Shown: piece after piece, positions 7,801 through 61,800 of the stretch
Position numbering within the stretch: the first letter of the stretch is position 1
Layout: every line of letters starts with the position of its first letter
Source: Laetmonice hystrix
Taxonomy: Eukaryota
Direction of reading: 5' to 3'
DNA: 64,000 nucleotides
Assembly: GCA_965235115.1 (NCBI GenBank)
Contig: OZ249452.1
Coordinates: forward strand, 12,834,001-12,898,000
Translations under genes and position numbers: made by a program
Notes under the pieces: generated by a model
Database searches by the model: none
What the model was told of the DNA's origin: nothing
What the model saw: the letters and a program-made list of their open reading frames with translations, nothing else

Positions 7801-10800
7801 TATGTGCCTGTCTCTAACTGAGTCTTCAGCCTAACTGTTGATTGGAAGTAAGTCAAGCAAGTACTCACGGACGACAACGGTGTTTGCGGTACAGGTGGCC
7901 CGACCCGCCGTGTTGGATGCCCGACATGAGTAGACACCAACGTCCTCCTGTGTAGTCTGACGGATGGTCAGCGAACAGGTCATCGTCTGAGGGTTGAACA
8001 CCATCGTCATACGATCATCTGGAACCATTTCCTTCTTGTCCTTCAACCAGTCGATGGTCGGTGTCGGGGCGCCGGTGACGGTCGCCTCAAAGACGCAGTC
8101 CTGGCCCTCCTTGACGACCTGTGGTTGGATGGGTTTGGAGAACCGCGGTGGCTCACCACTCTCTTTCTTCACGATCTTCTTGATGACCTTGACCTCTTTG
8201 TGAGTCACGGTTTCTCCATGGAGGATGTTCTGACCTGTGATGTCCAGCTCCTGTTTACGGATGATCTTCGTCTCTCTCTGCGCATCGACCTCGTCCTTCG
8301 GTCTGGGGACAATCATGTCCTCCTCGACTGGTCTACCGGCCATGGCAGGAGCTACCTGGACCTCAGTGACCATTGGTTCAAAGTCACGGATACCAGCACC
8401 TCTTGGTTTGGGGATGGAATCCCTCTTGACCTCGACAGGGATCACTTGGGGCTCCCCGGGTTTCCGGACGGTCAGGTTCCCTGACGTAACTGCAGTTCCC
8501 GATGAATTCCTTGCGACACACTTGAATGTTCCCTTATCGTCTGGCAGACACTCGACAATGAGACAATCGGTTTTGCCAGTTTTGCGATCGTAGTTGAGGA
8601 CAAAATCTTCACTCCTGTCTATACACTTGTTGTTGTGGAACCAGGAAACGTTTGGCTGGGGTTTACCTGTCACTGTACACGACAGAACCACCTCATCCCC
8701 ATCCACAGCGGAGCGATCAGCCAGGTCAACTAGGAACTTTGGCGGCTCGGGAGCCTCTGTTAACACAAATAAGAAACAAATAAATTGGTTTATTTTTTAC
8801 CTTTTTTCAAAATTGAATTTTTATCCAAACTGGCTAAACTTATAACTCAATTTCCTTAATATTCTACGTCAATTTTCCGATCTATATTCCCTTACAAAGT
8901 TTTTCGCATCCAACAGTTGGTAGTTCCTCCATGGTAAAATTTCCACGAAAAAAACCCAATACCATTCCTAACCTTAACCTATACCCCTCATTCTGTGGGT
9001 ACGTTACCTGTTACGTTCTGTGGGGAATATCTCTACACTTACCAAGCACATAGAGTGTTGTACTGCTGACAGCCTCGCCGACATCAGAAACAGCTCGGCA
9101 TGTGTAGACTCCTGTATCAGAGCCGGTGCACTCATTGACCTGAAGCACAGACTTGGTTCCCTCCAGAGAGACGACGTATTTTGGTGACGGTTTGATGAGC
9201 ATGCCGTTCACATGCCACGTGATCCGGGGTGGTGGGTAGGCCTGGATCTCGCATTCCAACCTGTATTACAATGGTATATGCAAATATCAGTAAGGGACGG
9301 GAGAAAGTATTGAATAATACTTCTACCCCTTATATGACCATCTGGTTGCTGGCTAATATATTAGAGATAAGATATTCATCTGATAAATTAGGTACAAATA
9401 TCATCATTTTCCAAGGAAACTGGGTAAAAGGCAATCGTCTTTTTCAATTCAATGGAAAATATCAGATTTTTCCCAAATATTTCGCAAGGAAATATACCCA
9501 AAATGATAAAATTAGTGGCTCTGACTGACCTTGCGATACCCCTGTCGGTGACCCTGATTTCGGGGTCAAGAGGTCGGAGGAAGGTCGGGCATATTTCAGT
9601 TGTTGTAGTTGTCGTCCTCTTCTCTGTAGTCACTGTACGCTTCGTCATGGCGATCGACACTTCCTGTGTCCCTGTTGGCAACTCCACGACCTTTTCTGAA
9701 GCTGCAGATCCCAAAGTACGTTATGTTATTTTGTAATTTTCAAAAATTCAGTGAAATATGAAAAAGTGTCAAAATATGCCGATTACTCCTTTCATCCACT
9801 GGCCTTACTTTACTCATTCCCGATGGTCAAAACCTTGATCCCTTTGGTCAAACATTTACGGTAGTAAGAACCTAACCTAATCATAACCCCTACTCCCACT
9901 CCAAAGACTTCCCAACGAAATGTTCCCTGTCGCTAGCCCCGCCTCTAACCCTAAACCGTTCCTCCAATTTCGAGAAATAACCCATTTTGTAAGGAGAATC
10001 CAGAGAACCATACGTGTGATGTTGAGCGTGGTTTTCCAGTTGATCTCGCCGAGATCATTGCTTGCCCGGAGGATGTAATCGCCGGAGTCAGACGGCTGAA
10101 CGTTAAAGATGATCAGCGTGATGACTCCGTTGTCATAGGCAACCTTAAATCTCTGTGACGGCTGGACTTGTCTGCCGTTGGCAAACCACGTGAAGCGGGG
10201 TGGCGGGTATGCTGCCACGTGTACGATCAGCCTGAAAATACAACCAGTTTCTTTGTGCAAGCTGTCTATCTCATCAAAATATCATGATCGAATCCGAAAC
10301 AAAGTAAGAGATTTCCTATGCATTTTCCAATGTTTCCAGAGCATTTGTTTGCAAACTCATCTGCTTACAAAAAAAGATTTTACCATACAAGTGCATGTTT
10401 AGTTTCAGGGGTTCATAAAGCGCTTAAATTCAAGACGCGGGGCTGGTAATGGTTGTTACACAGGGATAAAAATATAAAGAAATCTCCAAAAGTTCATGTA
10501 CGTGTCAGAGTTGTGGGTTGACTCACTTGGTGGTGTTTCCAGCTTTGACTTCCCTGACTGGTGATGGTGCTTTGACAAGTTGAGGAGGCTGAGCCTTTGG
10601 ACCAACCTTCAACTGTGCAGAGGAAATCTTCTTCACATCTGAAAAAATCATATTTCCCAGTAAAAAATAGGGTCTTCCACTTTTTTCTGAAGCCATAAAG
10701 TTTTTTCGTACGGATATTTAAGGTAATATTCGTAAATACTGTTCAGATCTCTTAGTAAGTGAGTATTTACGTGCTCATTTCAAATGAACTCAAGGAATAT

Positions 10801-28800: not shown

Positions 28801-31800
28801 ATCTGCCTGAGGATTGAGCCGGGAGGCGGTAAGGAAGTGTGTTAGTGTAGTTCTATGTACGCGTTACTCCGGCCGTCATCTCTGGAGTATTTATAGCAAC
28901 TCCTGGCTCCGCGTCCACAGGGCTTGGCGGACGGCCCAACCACCCCATTCCTCTCCCCTCCACACCTACAGCCCCCTCCCGTACCCCCAGGTAACTCGGA
29001 ATCCATGCCAGCATAATATTTATCTGTTGTATGTGACATCTTGTAACTCAGCCGCCTTACGTAACCGACATGCACTCTGCTGTTATACAGCTCTTTTCAT
29101 CTTAGGATCAAGCAATCTCTCGAGCCTAATGGCTGTGGTGAACGACATAGACTTATTTTTAGGCTTACCTAGTTTCTTTCCTATATAATTATTTTTGCAT
29201 TTACAATTTTTTATAAAGCAAGAAAATAAGTTAAGCATACATCGATATCAAAAGCCAATAATGCAATAACTGGCATAATCGTGGAAAATCTAACTTCTTA
29301 TATATTTCTTGGAAATTTTCAAAACTTTGCCATAAAAAAAAGAAAGGTCGGTAAACATGTGACCCTTTGACATTCTCCTAGTTACTACAGCTGTTGGCGC
29401 CCCCCTCCCCCACTCCCCGACCAGAACAACCCCCACATTCAGGCGAGGAAACACTTATATAGAGTCTACATGAGCCGGGGTATATATACAGGCTACAGAC
29501 ATACATCTACCCTCCTCCAGTCCCTGCCATACGCCACCCCTCAGACTGCATGGAGCCCTACTACTGGGTAGGCATATATAACCCACCCTCTTTCTGCTCC
29601 TTGTTCTGAAATAACTTTCCCGGCTGCTGTTTTTATCATACTGCGCCTACCGAGAAAGAAATGCCAAGAAATAGCCAGTCTGATACTAACACAGATATTG
29701 AAGACGAGACTGTTCTCTGTCTGTGGATCCTAGTACTCAGCCCAGTTCATGTATAATCACCGACAGCGACACTGGAGCTGACCTTGGCGACCTCACTATT
29801 CTTGACACCAGGGGGCGTGCTTGCCTGCAGCGTCTCAACCTAGATTTCTAGGATTCATTACATCACCATGGCGACAAGTACTGTTTAACCTCCTGACACG
29901 AATTAACCGACAGAAATCACTTTTCCTGGAGGCTGTCCATATTGTTACGTGCCCCTAGAATCTAGCACAGCGTAGTTTTTTTTTTTTTTTTTGGGGGGGG
30001 GGGCCCAGTGCTGCCATCCTCCGAGGGGCCCTGAAAACCGTTGTTTTATCAGGAGAAGGGGGTACGTTTGATTTACAATAGCCGGTGTAGGGTTTCACAT
30101 TACCCCCATCCAACCCCACCCACACACCTGGGGCTCATGTTCCCAAGACCGCGCTGTAATGCCCTACTCCCAAGGGTCTGCGGTCAACATACCTCACCAC
30201 CACCCCACCGGGCTAACTCCACCACCCCACCGGGCTAACTCCCTGAGCTGCCACCCTCACAGGTCCTCAAGTGGTCTATATACACCTACAACATACGGCT
30301 TCCCAGTGGAGGGCCAGGTTGGGGTATACCTAGACACAGCTCAAACAGGTTCTTAACATTTTCAGCTCAAATATTCGATAGTTCATTAACAACAGTCTGG
30401 AATGCTTGTCTGACACTATTTCAGTCCCAGGTATCTAAAGACTTCTACCCCATGGAATGATTTTAAGTTGTCCCTGAACAAATCAAGTCCCCAGAAATGT
30501 TTTCAACAGGGGCTGAAAGTCCCTCTTCCACATCAGGGGCCCAGGTTCAACCCCTGACCTTGTAATCATTTCCGGTATACCACGTGTGATCTCAGGCCTA
30601 CTACAGGATGGGACCGAGTCAAACATCTCTATTTGTTTTAAAAAGTGTGCTGTCCACAATTAGTCCTCACACGGCTGGAACACACGGGATCCAGATCAAC
30701 TGGTCGTCCCCAACAACAGGGCTGTTGCTCTTGGCAACCACCCTAGCAACCACCAACACCACTGACATCTGGCTATTCTGGGCGTGGCTTGTGACATAGT
30801 TACCAGAATCTCACATCTGGATATGTGGGATTTCCAAACCATCGTAACACCCATGACTTCATGACTTATAACAGCATACAATGAGTGCTTCTCACTGTTA
30901 CTGTGTGCTCCTAAAGACTTGCTAAGCGATATTTATATCTTCACTACATCTAATGTCTACCGCCTCAACCAGGTAAATTCTGAGCCTAGGTCGAGTGCTA
31001 GGTGAACTAACCTAAAACTTCCCCGGTGCGCCAACTCCTACTTTTTATGATGTTTCGACGGTAAACATCAAAGCTGAGAGACTTGAAATATTTCCCCCGA
31101 GCAGCTGGCTACAAGGCCGCCCACAGCCTCCGGTAAATATCCCGCAGCTGGCCCTGAGCGAGTTTTTTCCTACTTTTTAAAGACTAGATCTTGTTATCCG
31201 TGTAAATATAAAATGGCTGCACTCTGCATCTGATACCATCCTGCCATCCCAAGTACACCCGTACTGTACTTTTTACCCTACAACTTAACGGTGTGAAAGG
31301 AAGGCTGTATTTTTTAATCCTAATCTTTCAATGAGTCAGTGCTAGGTTCAGAGCCCCCCCCCTTTCATTTTCTACAATATCAAACAGATCATATCTATTC
31401 AGAAATGCAGATGTTAATCTATATCCCTCTACGAACGCGTCGTTTCCAGGAATCTATTTCAGTATGAAAGAGGACTGACTCATTCTGATTTTATTGCAGG
31501 TCGCTACAGTTTCAAAAATAGAAAAAAAACTCATCGCCACATAAGATTCCGTTTTCTGCAGAATCATTGTTTTGTCAGCGTTCCCTGCTGTTATCGTTCA
31601 GGGTGTGACGTCACTCATTGCGCGTGACGTGTCACAGCTGGTGATGAGTCAGGTACTGCAGACGGAGAGGTCTAAACCCGGTAAATCCTAACCTCAGTCC
31701 TACTACCCCGGTCTCTCCCACTACGCTCCTGGCTGATTGCCCACTTATGTATCAGTCAAGGTAATAAACTCCTAATGAGTTAATGTGAAACTTCCAGGGC

Positions 31801-43800: not shown

Positions 43801-46800
43801 CACGCCTTTAAATCTTCGACACGTCTCATCTTCAACCCTCGGCAATGTCCGTGGATTTCCGGCCTTCGGAAGGCATTCATTTGATTCATTTAATCGCCGC
43901 TTGGGGGCCAGTGTACTCAAGGCCTATAAACAGCAGAGGTTCTCGTGGCTACGTTTGTCTGAGGCTACAGAGCTGCCACCTGGTGTTTACAGACATAATC
44001 GGTTATTGGTTGTTTGAGGGACTGTCGGTATTATATCCTCTGACACAAACAGTCACTTCACTTCTGGTGCATGGGACTTTGCAATTGCATGCGCCTGTAA
44101 CCGGGTATAGGCGCATGCTCACCTATAGGCGCATACGCCTAAAAGTGCATCAATACTACTTGGCAAATATCTCAGTATTTCACAGCAAACACGGAACACA
44201 ATATCCACGAGATGAAAAAAAGTAGAATGGTGTCAGACAGTATGACTGAGACAAATTGTCCAAATGAGAAAACTGACAAACATTTTGACCACTGACCTGA
44301 TATTATCTGATATTTGGATAATTGGAAATATTGGCCAATTAAATTAGCAATAACAAGTCCTTCCTGCTTTAGTACCACTTTTACTATACTACTTACTTAA
44401 CAGGAATTTTATCCTATAAAAGCGTTCAAAACCCCACTTAAATACCCTGGACTTTTACTTACGTTTTGGTGATTTCCAATTACATTTTTATGAGAAACGT
44501 TGCCACAAAATGTCCCAAGAACTTCCTTCTATTAACCCTACGATTTAATTTAGAATATATCTCAGACTTTTACTTCAGACGTTTTTGTCCAGTTTCTCCA
44601 TTAGACCATTTATTACCGAACCATTCCGTCAGAGCACCATGACCCACACAATGTTGCTTACCTTTGACGACAAGTTCAGCCGAGCTGCTGACTGTCCCCG
44701 CGATGTTCTTCGCTTGACACTCATATTTCCCACCGTCCTCCTCGAATACTTCCGGTATCGTCAGTGTGACTCGCCCGTCCCGGAACGTAATCTCAAAGTC
44801 GGCACTTCCTGTGATCTCGTGTCCCGACTTGAACCACTTGATGGTTGGCTGTGGTTTTCCTGAGGGATAGGAATGAGATCCATAATGGCCTAATGAATCC
44901 AAATATAATATTAAAAACAGAAATTGCTACAGATGCAGTGATCACGAAACGAACCACTTCGAAAGGTTATAATTAAACCATCAGAGAAATGGTAACACTA
45001 ACAAAATATCATAAAATGATTGTAAATTTTTCCTTCAACTTACCGTCGTCCAGACCGCCTTGGAAGATCACCTTGGTGCCCTCCTGGGCTGTGATGTCTT
45101 TGATCGGCGCCACAAACTTAGGTGGAACAGGTAGTTCCACGTGGAGGTCCATCTGAGGGAACTTTGGCATCTGTAGTGGTTGTGGCGGCCCCGGTGGCTT
45201 CGGCGCTGGTGGTGGGGGCGGTGGTGGGGCCACGTATGGCTTCGGTTGTGGTGGCGGTTCTGGCTTCGGTGCCGGTGGTATATATGGCTTCGGTTGTGGT
45301 GGCGGTTCTGGCTTCATCACCGGTGCCGGTGGTGGTGGTGGTGGCACGTATGGCTTCGGTTGTGGTGGTGGTTCTGGCTTCATCACCGGTGGTGGTGGTG
45401 GTGGCACGTATGGCTTCGGTTGTGGTGGTGGTTGTGGCCTCATCACAGGTTGTGGTGGCGGTGGAGGTGGTGCCGCAGCGGCAACAGGTGCAACCATCAC
45501 CGGTGCGATAGGTTGCATCGGTGGTGGTGGTGGTGGTACGTAGACCGGTTGTGGCTTTGGTACAGGTACCACCATTGGTACAGGTTTCTGCACTGGACGC
45601 CCTCCCTGATACACCAAAGAACAAAGATGGTAAAGAATTAGCCTGTTTTTTTCTCTATCGGCTCCGTTCTCTTTACTTGCAAAGGCCTACCGCAACAGGA
45701 AGTTCAGCTGAAATATGTTATCTAAAGGCTAAAGGGCCTTATCCAGACATAAATAAGGTACCTAATATATGAGCACATACAAGAATATGTTTTTCTATTT
45801 TTGTTTACTATGGCTTACACAAACTCCTACATAGTGTCAAAATTATGGGGCCAGCCTGCTGGCCAGCTTAATGGATACGGCCCTTTAATACACATGTGTA
45901 TCAGAGGTCGAATGGACAATTTAAAATGTGCAAATTCATAAATATTATTATTTAGTTTACATGAAATTTTCATATCACCGTATCTATCATAAACATGAAA
46001 TATGCAATCACTAAAACAGTTTAGTTTTCCATACTCACACTAGGTGGCGACGGCGGCTTGGGTGGCGCTGCCGACTCGTCGACAACAACCAGAAGAGCTG
46101 CACAGGTCGCTTTGCCCGATTCGTTCTCAGCCGAGACAGAGAACCGTCCAGCGTCCTCATCAAACACCTCTGGGATGTAGAGACTGTAGTTGTCTCCAAA
46201 CTGTTGGATCTGGTAGTCTGGAGACACTACCGGCTCACCACCAAAGAACCAGCGTACCTGACAACAGGAGACAACATTCTTGCTTCAGTTATTTTCATCA
46301 GACGTTTACACCGCCTTACAGCTGATGTGTAACTTTGGCTGGTTCGAAATCTCGGCCATTGAGATTATCAAATAAAATTTCAAACTTCAAAAATCTAAGG
46401 GGGCGCCCCCCCCCCGATCTCCACTTGCAATGGTACCATTTCATAGAGCTACAGCCCTGGGATTTCCAGTTTTTTGTTGTTTTTTGTTTAAATCGAATCC
46501 CCAACATTACACTGTTATTGACACCTAGTACTTGCCCAGGAGGCACTGCCCCCCCCCCGATCAGTAATGTCCACCAGCCTGAACTCACCCTGGGTTTGGG
46601 GTTACCCGTGATGACAACCTCAAACTTGCACGAATCTCCAGCCTTCACTCTCATGTCACCAAACAACTTCTGGAACTCTGGGGGTCTGTGCCCCACGCCC
46701 ACAGTCGTCGTGGTTACTGTCTTCTGTAACATGTGAGAGGACTCCACGAGTCTGGTCTTCACGAAGTGGGACTCCATGGAAGGCTTGACAATCAGGGTCG

Positions 46801-55800: not shown

Positions 55801-58800
55801 TGAGAGGCACAAATATGAGCCATCCTTTAACCACTTTAACTGCTTCCAAGAGTCCTCCTTTAAACAACTGAACTGTTTTCGAGTCCTTCTTTAAATAATT
55901 GAACTGTTTCCGAGAGTCCTCCTTTAAATAAATTAACTGTTTCTGAGAGTCCGCCTTTAAATACCATAACTGTTTCCGAGTAGGGCAATTGTAACGTTAC
56001 GAATATCCTGCCCTACTTTAGCTCATAAAGTGGTTACATAAAATAAAATAAAATAAAGTTCTATGAAATCAATTTTTAGTTAATGATGTTAACAGGCACC
56101 TTGGCCACAAGATGTCTTCATTGTCTTACCTGTCTCAAGTCAAAGTAGAACTGGCAGACTTGTAGGTTCTGCTCGAGCCTGGCCCGTTGTTCGTCCCACG
56201 CCTGGTCCCACTGTCGTCTCCGTTCTTCTGTCATCTGAAGCACCTTCTGTACTTCATCTTTGGCGATCGCCTCCGAGTCCTGAAACACAAAGTATAAATT
56301 ATGTTTACTTCAATATATTGTCATCTACTGGCTATAGGAAAGCATATACCTATCAAGTACGTGTAAATGGGGCATTTTTATTCAACTAAAATGAAATGTT
56401 CACTGTCTACGAACTCAGTTAAAATCAGGAAGCCAGATATTGATAGGGAGAAACGCCCTATACTATAACTTTTTTTTACTGACTTCCAAAAAAACCCAGA
56501 AAATCTCAAAGGTTGAAAAGGATCCCATATCCCCCGCCAGAGGGCAGGACCTGCCCGCGTCCCCCCCCCCCCCCCCCCCACCTTCGCGTTCCTCACCTGT
56601 TGTCGGACCCGCACCACGATCTGTTCACCTTCCTCCGAGCTGAAGTTAATGAGTTCCTTCACTTTGTCTCGGTTTGACTCGTGTTCTCGGAGCATTACCT
56701 CTGCTTTCGTTAGTTCTTTAGGCAGCTCGGTGGCTGCGAAGTCTTGTTCTGTATTCTCAATCAGCTTGTCCAGCTAACAGATAAATATGTGAGGAAATGT
56801 TTAGAAAACATCCATGTTAAGTTTGATTGAGGTATTGGTAAGCGTGTCTTCCCTGATAAAAAGTTTTCAAAATGGCTATTTTAAATAATGATTTCCTACC
56901 AATAAATAGTTGAATATTTTTCTACATATTGTTACACTGATTTCTGGTAGCCACGTATGTTTGCTTTACCTGGTTGAGGTTTTTGAAGAACTTGATTGTC
57001 ATATTAAGTAGTACTGAGTATTCTGTTATCCTTGCTTGGAAGCGAGTGTGAACTTTAAGTAGCTCATTTACGATCTGTTCCTTCTGCCCTCTGGTGTCAC
57101 CTTTCAGAGACAGCATCTCCGCTGTCTTTAGGTGAGTCTCGATCTCCTCTTGCGCTTTCTGAAAACGGAAATGTTTTAAAACTAAGTTCATAATCAGTTC
57201 AAACGGTCATTGATGTTTTCTTACCTTTTTTTCTCTTCTTTCATTTCTTTTAATCACTAATGGTAATGATAATGTCATTACTCTGACTGGACGAAGAAAC
57301 ATTCAGGTTTTGACAAACGGGAATTCGTTGAACAGGAAACATTCACAACATGAGATCATTCCAGATTCACGGTGCAGTCATACCAACACAGATAGAAGTA
57401 AGGGCGGAGAGTTTTTATACTGATATCTTCTTTTCCAAGTCCCTGGGGGCGAAATTCTGTTTCAGATTTTAATCCCTAAAGAAACTTAAATCTGTTCTGG
57501 TAAAATAAATGGATGATAAGATCTTCAAACCTGGTTCTTTTACTTTCCCAAACTGGTACTTTCGCTGAAGTCATACTTTTCCAATCTGGTACTTTTACTG
57601 AAGTCATTCTTTCCAAACTGGTACTTTTCTCTTTTTCCCCTCAATTTCCATTCATATTTTTTTCTATCATTAATGTATCTAACTCTAAGACTGAAACAGA
57701 ATTTTGAATCTACAAGAGCTCCAACTACAAGCCTAACATACACGCTACTACTGGACAATACCACCACCAAGTGCTCCATCCTCAACTAAGACAGATAGTC
57801 ACACACAGACAAAGCTCAGATATCATATATCAACGGATCTTCTAGCCTCTATCACATGCTGACTTCAAGATGACTCCCTGATTGACAGTTGATCATGCTA
57901 GGTGATCTCCCCACCCTACCCACCTAAAGATATTTGCATTTTCTTGAGGTCATGAGTTTCAACAGGACCCATCTAACAGTAACTGCGCTACGCTACAACG
58001 AAAGACAGTCTTAGTTCTCAAATACGACACTAGGTGGCTAGGAGATTTCCGTTTCAGAGATTTCGGAACCGAATTCACCTAACTTTACACTGACCCACTG
58101 GGGAGTCCAATACAGGATATAAGATTTTTCGAGAACCCCGATTTTTTTGGAGGGGGGGGGGGATTTTTTAATTATTCGGAGAAGGGACTTGTTACTGAAA
58201 GATAATGAGATCCGCGTATGAAAAAATCGTTCACTTTGCACACAAACATATACGTATATAACACTTTTCAAAGGCACTTTTCCTTCATAATTTTATCTGA
58301 CGATGGATTCAATGAAAGTTTTTCCACCCAACTCAACCTTTACTCTACTGACAGAGATGTATTTAATATTAAGTTTTTTAGTTCGTGACAGCATGCAAAC
58401 ACCAACCAACATGTTATGACCCTTACTGTAACACCACTGAGTTAATTATAACCAATGCGTAAGTAAAAAATTAGTACAGGCGGATCCAGGGGTATCAGGG
58501 GGCTCAGCCCCCCCCCCCCCCAATCAATCTATCTTCGTTCCTCATTGATCTTTCTGACTTGACCAAGTTGAGCCCCCCCCCCCTCCCCCGTCCTCCACAA
58601 TCCTGGATCCACCAGTGACAAGCACAAATTTTACCATGCAGTAAAGCATTAGATCCCTTGCTAATCCCTCGGAGCTGACCATGCTAAATTCCTTGATTTA
58701 AATCTTTATATTTTACCTTTGAGGTGGGACCGAATTCGTCCAGTTTTTTCTGCAATGATTTCGTCTCCTCTACGGTCTTACCGAGGTGGCCAGATATGTA

Positions 58801-61800
58801 CGGTACAAAGAGATCTTTCTCTACCAATCTGACCCAGTCGATGGTCTACAAACAATCACACAGTAACCCAGCCTTCTATTATAGTCAGTTACAGCAATCA
58901 AACACAACATCGCCATTAGTGCTGAGGGAAGGAAAGATATGTGCAGACACCCTTATCACCTAGCTCAGTTTAAAAATAAAAAAAAGTTAAAAATGATCTC
59001 CATGGTTGTTTGTCTTGGGGAAACACTCGTAATTTCATCCACTTATTCCAAATGTTTAAAAAGAAAAATGTTTATTTGATATTTTTAGATAATTAGTCCA
59101 CGAAAAGAAAATTGGGTATCTTCACAAGAACTTTCCTTCCGTCCAAGCATGTTGAGCGTGAACATAAACCATAGATCCAGCAAGCACCAAGGTGTACCTT
59201 GACGGTCGGTCTAAAGTCGTCAAGCCGTTTCTGATAGTGTTTAACAGATTCCATTGACGACCCCAACTCGCCCGCAATCATGGGGAAAAACTTGTCCTCA
59301 ACACTCATCACCCAATCAATGGTCTGCGGATATAAAACAGCACTTCTGATTGGCTTACGGACTCTGGACGTCGGAAAGCATTCCAATAGGAGAAAAAGAG
59401 GATTATGGATATATTATAAACGTCTCTTGTTCTTTGAGTAATGCAAGACCTCAGAACAGAACACTTCTATTTTTATTTTTTTGGGATAATTTCCGCTATT
59501 CTGATCTACTGGAACTCATGCATTTTTTCCACCAAATATATTTCGCCAAACTGGGTGAGATGAGGAAAGGGTTGCCCACAGACATGCGAGCAGATGGTGC
59601 CTGTCTGGAAATTATTCAAAGAACAAGATTTTGAAGTGCTCTATCTTCTCGAGTTTACCACAAATACTTTTTGTACAAATAAATATTTAATAAAATAATT
59701 TCATAATGACATTAAAATTCACACCATTACAGTCCATTTTTACAGCTATGGTCTGCAACAAATTCAACTGCAACTGAAATTAGACATTCTTATAAAAATA
59801 CATTAGACAGATTATTAATACCACAAATCAAACTTTTGTTCCCTACATTCAGATGGAAAAAGAATCCACCAAAGCTCTCGGCTTGCTTAAGTAGAAAGAC
59901 AGAACATAGTGTAGCCAACTCCACTTGATGACAAAGCTATTACCGGTACTTATCTTACATACCAATTAAGACACGCTAAAAGTAAACATTTTTATTTTCG
60001 GATACTGATTTAAAGACCAAAGAAATCTCAAAGCATGTTATAACAATAAAAAAAATCATTTTACTAAAATTATGTATTTTTCTTGGCAGTTGTAATCTTG
60101 AACGTTGACATCAGATGGCAGGTAAATCATGTTTAGTGTGTGGTCCTACCTTACGAGCGTCCTGGACGAACTGGTGCCACTGGACTTTGAACTCCTTGCC
60201 GGTGTTAATGTGAACCTTCCAGTGGGTGTAGTACTCAGTCACCAAGAACTTACGTTCTGTGAACTGACTGATGATCATTTCTACCACCGTCACAGCGCGA
60301 CGTGTGTCTAACTTCTCATCATTTTTAACCTAACAATAAAAGATGGTAAATGTTGGGTAAAGATCTGGTCAGTTATTAAATTATATCATATCCTATTATG
60401 TATGTGATATACAGAGTAATTCACAAGTAGATTAACAGTTGAATTCTTTTTTTCTGAAGGGCAAAAAATGGTAAATTTAGATTTACTCAATTAAAATGAA
60501 AATCATATAAATTAAATTTAGCTTATGTTAACTGTAAAATCTCTAATATAAATACTGCAGTCCCCGATGAGACATTAAAATTTAACTGTGGAGTTTAGGT
60601 TTAGCCAGTTTATAATTCCGATCCTCGCCACCAGTTGAGCGTACGATCACTTCCCCTGACAGACTGCCCCCTAGTGGCGACGTCACTAAACTACTCACGT
60701 CCTTTGCTTCCTTTATAAACGTTTTTCCATGACCTTCGACCTCTGAGTACATCTGGTTCATTGTGTTATATTTCTCCTCCTTGTGAGCGACGGACGCGTC
60801 TGTTACCTCAGCTGGATCGAGTTTCTCGATCTTCAGATATTGCTCCAGAGCGTCCATCTTTATGGCAAGCTGAATGGGCAGAAAATCACAATCAGTACTT
60901 TCACTGTATATCATCATTTCTGTAATAACAAAGATGCCAAATATAAATCTTGCTGATCACTTTTTCAGTTAAATTTGTATGAGGCACACCACACCTGAAT
61001 CGACTTAGACGTTTAGGCAATATTTATTTGAGAAGATTCTACCGTAGGTTCTGAAAGTCTAAGCGACCTTTGCTACCTTCAACTGACTCTGTATTTTTTT
61101 CTGGTTTCACTTGTTACAGCACTACTGATCCACCATCCAAACAAAGGATCAAATGACCAGAATCAGAATCAGAGAATGTCAAACTTACTTGTTGCGCTTT
61201 TTTATGAAAAGAGACATAGGAGAGTGCTAGTTTGATACGCATCTCTACGACAGCTAGCAGTGCGTCCCATTGCTGCTGTAGAGACTTGACCTTGTCCAAG
61301 GCCGCCGCCCCTTCCTGGTCCCCTGACTTCACCAGGGTGACGGCTGCCTGTTTCAAGGACTGCATATCTCCACTCTTTGCCTGAAACCATGACGACAAGG
61401 TTACTATGGTAACACACTAACGACATGGAGATAACTTGAGGGAAACAAGTTGACTATTTATTACTTCATTACTCGTGAATATCCCATAGCAGGGGCTGAT
61501 CCATTTATTTCATAAATAGGGCGTTCAGCCATTGTAAAAACAGATTCGATCTTGTATGCATCATTGTCTAACCACATTTATTATTCAAAGTACCCCAGTA
61601 GATTTTGGAACAGAATCAAAAACAAAATCAGGCAAATTGTGCAGAACAAATAATGACTAATCATTTCTGACTCTCTCTCCCCCTAAAAAAAACCCCAAGG
61701 GTTAAAACCCTTGACCCTCTGCCCACTGAACTTGCTACAACCACCCCTATCCGTATCCGTGATTCCGTATATTGCCGTAAGGTGGCAGCAGGGGTACTAA

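Follow-up and report, generated by a model that had tools for sequence, protein, structure and literature searches.

A tandem-duplicated exon pair, probably mutually exclusive, within one spectrin repeat of a titin-family gene of Laetmonice hystrix

We found that two neighbouring exons, here called A and B, on the minus strand of a 64,000-nucleotide (nt) stretch of Laetmonice hystrix DNA (the window: assembly GCA_965235115.1, contig OZ249452.1, positions 12,834,001 to 12,898,000; positions below are counted from the first letter of this stretch) are best explained as a tandem-duplicated mutually exclusive exon pair, a reading to which we give a rough probability of 0.86. The pair lies in a giant titin-family gene in which a spectrin rod like that of SESTD1 and CCDC141 (zormin) is followed by immunoglobulin (Ig) and PEVK-like regions, and what we infer beyond the splicing itself is an effect on function. 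Exon E9 would be joined to A or to B and then to E11, generating two in-frame isoforms that differ only in 42 or 43 residues of one spectrin repeat. From one muscle or cell type to another, the swap would most likely alter a partner-binding surface, or else the rod's stability or its hinge. An earlier note, made from the letters of the window, had placed two adjacent phase 0-0 exons at 59198-59323 and 58717-58845, 352 nt apart, and had proposed that they are swapped; coordinates, splice sites and peptides proved to be as it described, and its remark that B is absent from the list of open reading frames (ORFs) is in keeping with the sequence, the ATG/GTG/TTG-started ORF over B being only 47 amino acids (aa) long.

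Evidence for either/or splicing came from X4, a small sequencing run of the same sample. A 3.5-kb stretch used as query matched DNA-like runs only, and X4 surfaced when exon E11 alone was the query. Over positions 56300-61000, X4 has depth over exons only, and every joint is GT..AG at the predicted borders. One contig of 178 nt consists of 25 nt of E9, all of A and 27 nt of E11 (depth 70.7), and another of 181 nt consists of 25 nt of E9, all of B and 27 nt of E11 (depth 32.7); the A contig reaches 27 nt into E11 and the B contig begins 25 nt inside E9, with no branch in either. Because A and B share their first five and last three bases, these flank lengths fit a clean 31-mer bubble. The four junctions that the earlier note had predicted for swapped exons were all present (60150->59323, 59198->57158, 60150->58845 and 58717->57158). 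The contrary joint from A to B (59198->58845) was not found among the contig joints of X4, nor was the skip joint from E9 to E11 (60150->57158), in this single run whose contigs drop rare variants. Both forms are made, at an A:B ratio of about 70:33 by contig depth, which is a rough measure, and a form containing A and B together was not seen. In transcript order, the region reads as follows.

60150-60329, minus strand: exon E9, 180 nt, phase 0-0; X4 contig 60150-60327; kept in all relatives.
59324-60149, minus strand: intron 1 (E9 to exon A), 826 nt; spliced out in X4 (joint 59323/60150, CT..AC on the plus strand, equal to GT..AG).
59198-59323, minus strand: exon A, 126 nt or 42 aa, ...ccgcag/ACC ... 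AAG/gtacac, phase 0-0.
58846-59197, minus strand: intron 2 (exon A to exon B), 352 nt; its own removal was never seen (no 59198/58845 joint in X4).
58717-58845, minus strand: exon B, 129 nt or 43 aa, ...ttgtag/ACC ... AAG/gtaaaa, phase 0-0.
57159-58716, minus strand: intron 3 (exon B to E11), 1558 nt; spliced out in X4 (joint 57158/58717); contains long G and C runs.
56970-57158, minus strand: exon E11, 189 nt, phase 0-0; X4 contigs 57038-57160.

In the A form, intron 3, exon B and intron 2 are removed together (X4 joint 57158/59198).

We then compared the two exons with each other. A and B align end to end with 56% identity (24/43, one gap, E 3e-15 by BLASTP) and are the sole two copies in a six-frame search of the whole 627-Mb assembly. 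Identity at codon positions 1, 2 and 3 is 62%, 74% and 29%; synonymous sites are saturated (proportion of synonymous differences, pS, 0.82) versus a proportion of nonsynonymous differences (pN) of 0.35; and the intron sequence flanking A and B is about 28% identical, which is the random level. The likeness of A and B lies far above chance and carries a protein-coding signature, and these contrasts in codon position, site class and flanking intron point to an old duplication of which both copies have been kept under protein-level selection, with no decaying copy. An assembly duplication was rejected, as DNA contigs of three DNA-like runs span exon A, exon B and the 352-nt intron between them.

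A search with the E11 ORF gave 35 short genomic ORFs from other assemblies, with contig DNA for nine loci; some of these are two copies of one gene, each copy from a different run or sample (L007/L008, L012/L013 and L014/L015). E11 is 68-89% identical in these relatives. Seven other genomes (L004, L005, L006, L007, L011, L014 and L016) each carry a 126-nt A-type and a 129-nt B-type exon, always in the order A then B between E9 and E11 and with intact AG..GT sites. In every species intron 2 is shorter than introns 1 and 3, ranging from 32 to 455 nt (178, 181, 418, 455, 256 and 308 nt in the relatives other than L007). An eighth relative, L012/L013, has the B type alone (L012:4075-4661, 43 aa), with no recognisable A-type relic in either copy, and has lost the A-type exon altogether; its sequence type is common in metagenome contigs of JGI and ENA. 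A-type orthologues are thus found in seven other genomes, and B-type orthologues in eight as well as in annotated Lingula and Octopus proteins, while a profile of 15 A and B exons detected many further genomic ORFs of both types. Between species, pN is well below pS in both exons, and the ratio of nonsynonymous to synonymous substitution rates (dN/dS) is 0.14-0.36 where estimable, and about 0.14-0.28 for exon B. The comparison with relatives that the earlier note had proposed found both exon types kept, and exon B is intact there and under purifying selection. Since L012/L013 has no version other than B, and B is also what the annotated titins of Lingula and Octopus carry, B is a working exon in its own right. 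The pair accordingly combines homology, a common phase with near-equal length, either/or transcripts and selection on both copies, the properties of a mutually exclusive pair formed by tandem duplication.

Among the window, L005, L006, L011, L014 and L016, between-species pS was 0.47-0.67 for exon A but mostly 0.75-0.9 for exon B and for E11; of the pairs compared, only L011-L014 gave a low value for exon B (0.29). The lower synonymous divergence of exon A may be due to constraint by splicing signals or RNA structure, at about 27 synonymous sites per exon.

To place the exons in the protein we used AlphaFold2 (AF2) models of orthologues from two different species, which stand in for the window's own spliced protein. 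In both models the exon falls within a single spectrin repeat, on the final 12 residues of helix A, the A-B loop and roughly the first 20 residues of helix B. E9 supplies helix C of the preceding repeat and the beginning of helix A in the switched one, and E11 supplies the remainder of helix B together with helix C. A transcript including both exons would duplicate part of one triple-helix repeat, as the earlier note had argued. Models of a two-repeat segment from Saccoglossus (A-like, predicted local distance difference test score, pLDDT, 80) and Lingula (B type, pLDDT 85) have the same topology, with three long helices and a continuous C/A helix between repeats, and an A-B loop of 10 residues in Saccoglossus and 8 in Lingula that is of low confidence. 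The best PDB matches are tandem spectrin repeats (probability 1.00, but E 0.015 and template modelling score 0.4-0.6). Pfam Spectrin and Spectrin_7 matches are weak for single exons of the window; in the Saccoglossus orthologue they are strong, with Spectrin at 1.9e-50; a Spectrin_7 repeat ends at residue 670 (569-670), and the switched exon covers residues 692-733.

At the following positions of the exon peptide the two types differ across all lineages.

Position 10: Asp/Asn in the A type, Lys/Arg in the B type.
Position 12: Phe in the A type, mostly Leu in the B type.
Position 14: absent in the A type, an extra residue (before Pro) in the B type.
Position 16: aliphatic in the A type, Tyr/His/Phe in the B type.
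Position 20: Glu/Asp in the A type, non-acidic in the B type.
Position 31: Tyr in the A type, Leu in the B type.
Position 42: Val/Phe/Tyr in the A type, Ala/Ser in the B type.

The A type is recognised by the motifs FF-P and G-E/D-LG and the B type by Pro-Tyr. Compared with A, B has an aromatic residue shifted from helix B to the loop and one charge flipped, suggesting that A and B give the repeat two alternative local packings or surfaces, each co-adapted; the need to exchange the exon as a whole would follow from this.

To date the pair, we built a tree of 31 exon peptides over 42 columns, with the insertion column excluded. The A-type exons all grouped in one clade (support 95/83), and the 43-aa exons likewise in a second (96/85). 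Amphioxus, on a long branch, takes no firm place within the 43-aa clade, and Saccoglossus and crinoid fall outside both. A B-type segment of 43 aa is present in the annotated titins of Lingula and Octopus, the same one in all five full-length Octopus isoforms of the cluster (5/5). In amphioxus and crinoid, the two deuterostome genomes examined, the genomic interval contains one copy only, and insect orthologues among the matches have one 42-aa segment. Exon A is ancestral-like. In a tree of the flanking exons (123 columns), Octopus is joined by L004, L011 and L014 (90/92); these three lie no nearer to the window's group than Lingula does and no farther from it, and a wider tblastn comparison weakly favours placing them with molluscs. 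By this tree and these identities, L004, L011 and L014 are probably mollusc-like, and the pair was probably already present when the annelid-like and mollusc-like lineages parted.

Independent, convergent origin of the pair in those two lineages is unlikely, although the exon tree has 42 columns only, the taxa of several relative contigs are inferred, and just one exon appears in the annotated proteins of Octopus and Lingula. Convergence would have to account for A-type exons of both lineages falling in one clade and B-type exons in another even with the insertion column left out, for the same one-residue insertion, Pro-Tyr, Lys10 and Leu31 in both lineages, and for the A-then-B order everywhere. 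Extending a common origin further back is tentative, and we rate the following proposal at somewhat below even odds: the switch would predate the split of annelids, molluscs and brachiopods, more than half a billion years ago, and would be a spiralian-wide, unannotated two-version repeat in the SESTD1/CCDC141-like rod, with the versions used in different muscle types and differing from each other in their co-adapted loop packing and in their partner (sarcomeric or membrane) or mechanical setting. If this were true, public Octopus and Lingula gene models would show the B form only.

Exclusion in this genome, with its 352-nt spacer, would most likely be achieved by regulated competition between A and B, through trans-acting factors or RNA structure. 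Reading frame and nonsense-mediated decay (NMD) are ruled out as enforcers because 126 and 129 are both multiples of 3, and incompatibility between U2 and U12 splice sites was rejected, all sites being ordinary GT-AG. Steric exclusion fails for this genome because the spacer measures 352 nt, and there is a plausible branch site near exon B. In the compact genome of L007, A and B lie only 32 nt apart (L007:9767-9798, also L008:2607-2638; gtaaatatat...aaacag), with neighbouring introns of 139 and 94 nt; since this gap is too short to splice and is also out of frame, L007 appears to be a natural case of steric mutual exclusion. As for RNA structure, L005 has one 28-nt complementary pair flanking exon A (introns 1 and 2, 8371-9016 and 9143-9320) that scored 41 versus a shuffle maximum of 29 and may loop out exon A; no counterpart of this pairing was found in other species. 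A repeat search of the introns returned AT-rich or G-run/C-run pairs only, and a whole-intron duplex calculation (RNA.duplexfold) gave global duplexes with |z| below 1.7, which is uninformative.

Several points weigh against a strictly exclusive pair. The transcript evidence is one RNA data set from one sample, X4 was taken as RNA from its exon-only, spliced contigs and not from its record label, and, as contigs drop rare variants, a minor A+B or skipped form may exist. No spliced transcripts from relatives were found when the profile of 15 A/B exons was run against 5.8 billion proteins, which yielded genomic ORFs only. On the side of mechanism, blastn between the close pair L011/L014 conserves exons only, with no conserved intronic block, and an ungapped stem search found no stem above shuffles in the introns of this genome. 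We also claim no structural difference between A and B from the AF2 models, in which the loop is of low confidence and exon type is confounded with species.

These points leave some room for the alternative that B (or A) is an ordinary cassette exon, not strictly exclusive, with some mRNAs carrying both exons or neither. Such products would be in frame and escape NMD, as both exons are multiples of 3 and their flanks are in phase 0, intron 2, at 352 nt, has sufficient length for splicing, and contigs lose rare forms. However, B follows immediately on E9 in its contig and A is followed immediately by E11 in its own, neither contig branches, and no A-B or E9-E11 joint is present; inclusion of both would duplicate part of one three-helix bundle; and the 32-nt gap of L007 is unspliceable and out of frame. 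We therefore regard the cassette explanation as improbable, marginally more so than convergence. Least credible by far is that exon B is a decaying or non-functional pseudo-exon spliced in as noise, or, in the earlier note's terms, never spliced in and disrupted in relatives: B is a short exon that ORF lists with the default length setting miss, and its contig depth is below that of A, but it is joined in X4 at about a third of the total depth, which is no noise, its third positions are randomised against A while positions 1 and 2 are kept, its length, frame and splice sites are retained in eight other genomes at the low dN/dS given above, and it is the sole version in L012/L013 and the annotated one in Lingula and Octopus. 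Pseudo-exon, assembly-duplication and both-included readings were thus rejected on codon signature, RNA contigs, conservation and selection, and mutually exclusive use of A and B is the reading we retain.

Turning to the host gene, Pfam matches along the strand indicate that the whole 64-kb window is one minus-strand gene. From 64000 to about 54000, exons match DUF7799, Spectrin_7 and Spectrin, and beyond ~54000 along the minus strand there follow many I-set Ig exons in series, and a PEVK-like exon rich in proline. The latter (45012-45686, minus strand) is an open Pro-rich exon of 225 aa with repeated PPPQPKPY(V/I)PPPPP units, a PEVK-like spring segment between Ig exons. Upstream of the switched region lies one further exon covered by X4.

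60699-60869, minus strand: 3' part of exon E8, a Spectrin_7-type repeat (Pfam match on the ORF); exon end 60699; X4 contig 60697-60869.

E8 is spliced to E9 in X4 across a GT..AG intron (joint 60327/60697, cut +2). The closest named proteins, a 'titin-like' protein of Saccoglossus, a 'titin' of Lingula, a 'titin-like' protein of Octopus, an amphioxus model and a crinoid model, all share the spectrin-then-Ig layout, and orthologues named titin or titin-like, 4184-7334 aa long, contain both the spectrin and the Ig parts. With SESTD1-type and CCDC141-type spectrin repeats followed by I-set Ig arrays on one strand, the gene appears, by sequence, to match the fused SESTD1-CCDC141(zormin)-titin architecture that has been named 'connectitin' (PMC12198301); Drosophila zormin is treated as the CCDC141 orthologue (PMC12657953). 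The earlier note's 'sls-type' label, given to a gene with a zormin-like N-terminus, is refined to this fused arrangement. The 10 kb upstream (L003) contain two further spectrin-like exons and no obvious Sec14 exon, with no search made beyond them; the crinoid orthologue carries CRAL_TRIO_2. A bacterial promoter/terminator scan of the window was disregarded, the gene being eukaryotic.

Some further features of the sequence were recorded. Position 58810 in exon B reads G>C relative to the reference in X4, X2 and X3, a synonymous change (ctc to ctg), and position 60768 in exon E8 reads A>G in X4 and in the DNA runs X2/X3; both differences probably represent the other haplotype of the same sample. 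Long G runs or C runs lie at 56560-56586, 58140-58162 and 58505-58600, in introns, and the first is read in frame by an ORF extending past exon E12. Contigs of the DNA runs break at these runs, and the many chimeric joints between such places in X1-X3 were rejected as splicing and attributed to repeat artefacts. In L006, a long interspersed nuclear element (LINE)-type ORF with endonuclease and reverse transcriptase occupies positions 1-2297, about 5 kb upstream of E9. In Branchiostoma lanceolatum (L009:28896-28940, 29386-29421 and 29755-30365; CAH1249860), the E9-like exon and the A/B-like exon are each followed closely downstream by a short duplicate of their own 3' end, and the first half of the E11-like exon is present in five tandem 122-nt copies, two of which are read into the CAH1249860 protein. 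These amphioxus duplicates look like splice-junction-seeded repeats.

Few alternative-splicing events have clear functional evidence, and either/or exon pairs with a survival of hundreds of millions of years belong to them. The setting of this one is a little-studied SESTD1/CCDC141(zormin)-like spectrin rod that heads a titin-family gene, and whose sarcomere-anchoring role is now being worked out (PMC12657953). The pair marks one helix-loop-helix surface of one repeat as functionally important and offers A and B as two natural variants for comparisons of binding and stability. As to annotation, no more than one exon of the pair is at present included in the gene models of these animals. The class, mutually exclusive pairs formed by tandem duplication, is well known, and none has been described in this gene region: we found no paper on the pair in full-text literature on zormin/sallimus, spectrin-repeat mutually exclusive exons or annelid tandem exon duplication, in keeping with the earlier note, which knew of no such exon in the spectrin region of sls-type genes. 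The class itself is familiar; what makes the pair useful as a handle is how old it is, the residues that set the two types clearly apart, and its location in the head of a titin-family gene, a part that is poorly understood.

Among known systems, exons 2 and 3 of alpha-tropomyosin are mutually exclusive by steric hindrance. The relative L007 resembles them, with 32 nt between the 5' splice site that ends A and the 3' splice site that precedes B, whereas the spacer in this window is 352 nt. Duplicated exons of the Dscam type, for which a model of docking-site and selector RNA structures exists (PMC6071210), are similar in being a tandem arrangement whose exclusion is enforced by neither frame nor spliceosome type, the situation in which competing RNA structures are usually proposed; the present pair differs in having no conserved intronic block (L011/L014) and no stem above shuffles here, with the L005 pairing as the only candidate. 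Drosophila zormin/sls and human SESTD1-CCDC141-TTN (PMC12198301; PMC12657953) share the SESTD1-like repeat (DUF7799/Spectrin_SESTD1), the CCDC141/zormin-like repeats and the Ig arrays, but the isoforms that those papers describe arise through alternative promoters and read-through transcripts, and an either/or spectrin exon is not among them. Human tandem duplicated exon substitution events (PMC9741552, PMC8373072; human mutually exclusive exon survey, PMC5740500) are likewise ancient duplicates, both selected, whose isoforms are identical save for the homologous stretch; unlike those events, this pair is absent from the amphioxus and crinoid genomes examined, and PMC9741552 makes no mention of CCDC141, SESTD1, TRIO, KALRN, TTN or spectrin. 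Finally, the mutually exclusive exon clusters of muscle myosin heavy chain, which are metazoan and are reported outside arthropods too (PMC3912159, PMC2257972), differ in that they swap part of a motor domain, whereas the switch described here lies in a spectrin repeat and has two variants only. Like them, it consists of tandem homologous exons of equal phase in a sarcomeric gene, with one exon per transcript, a structural segment swapped and long conservation.

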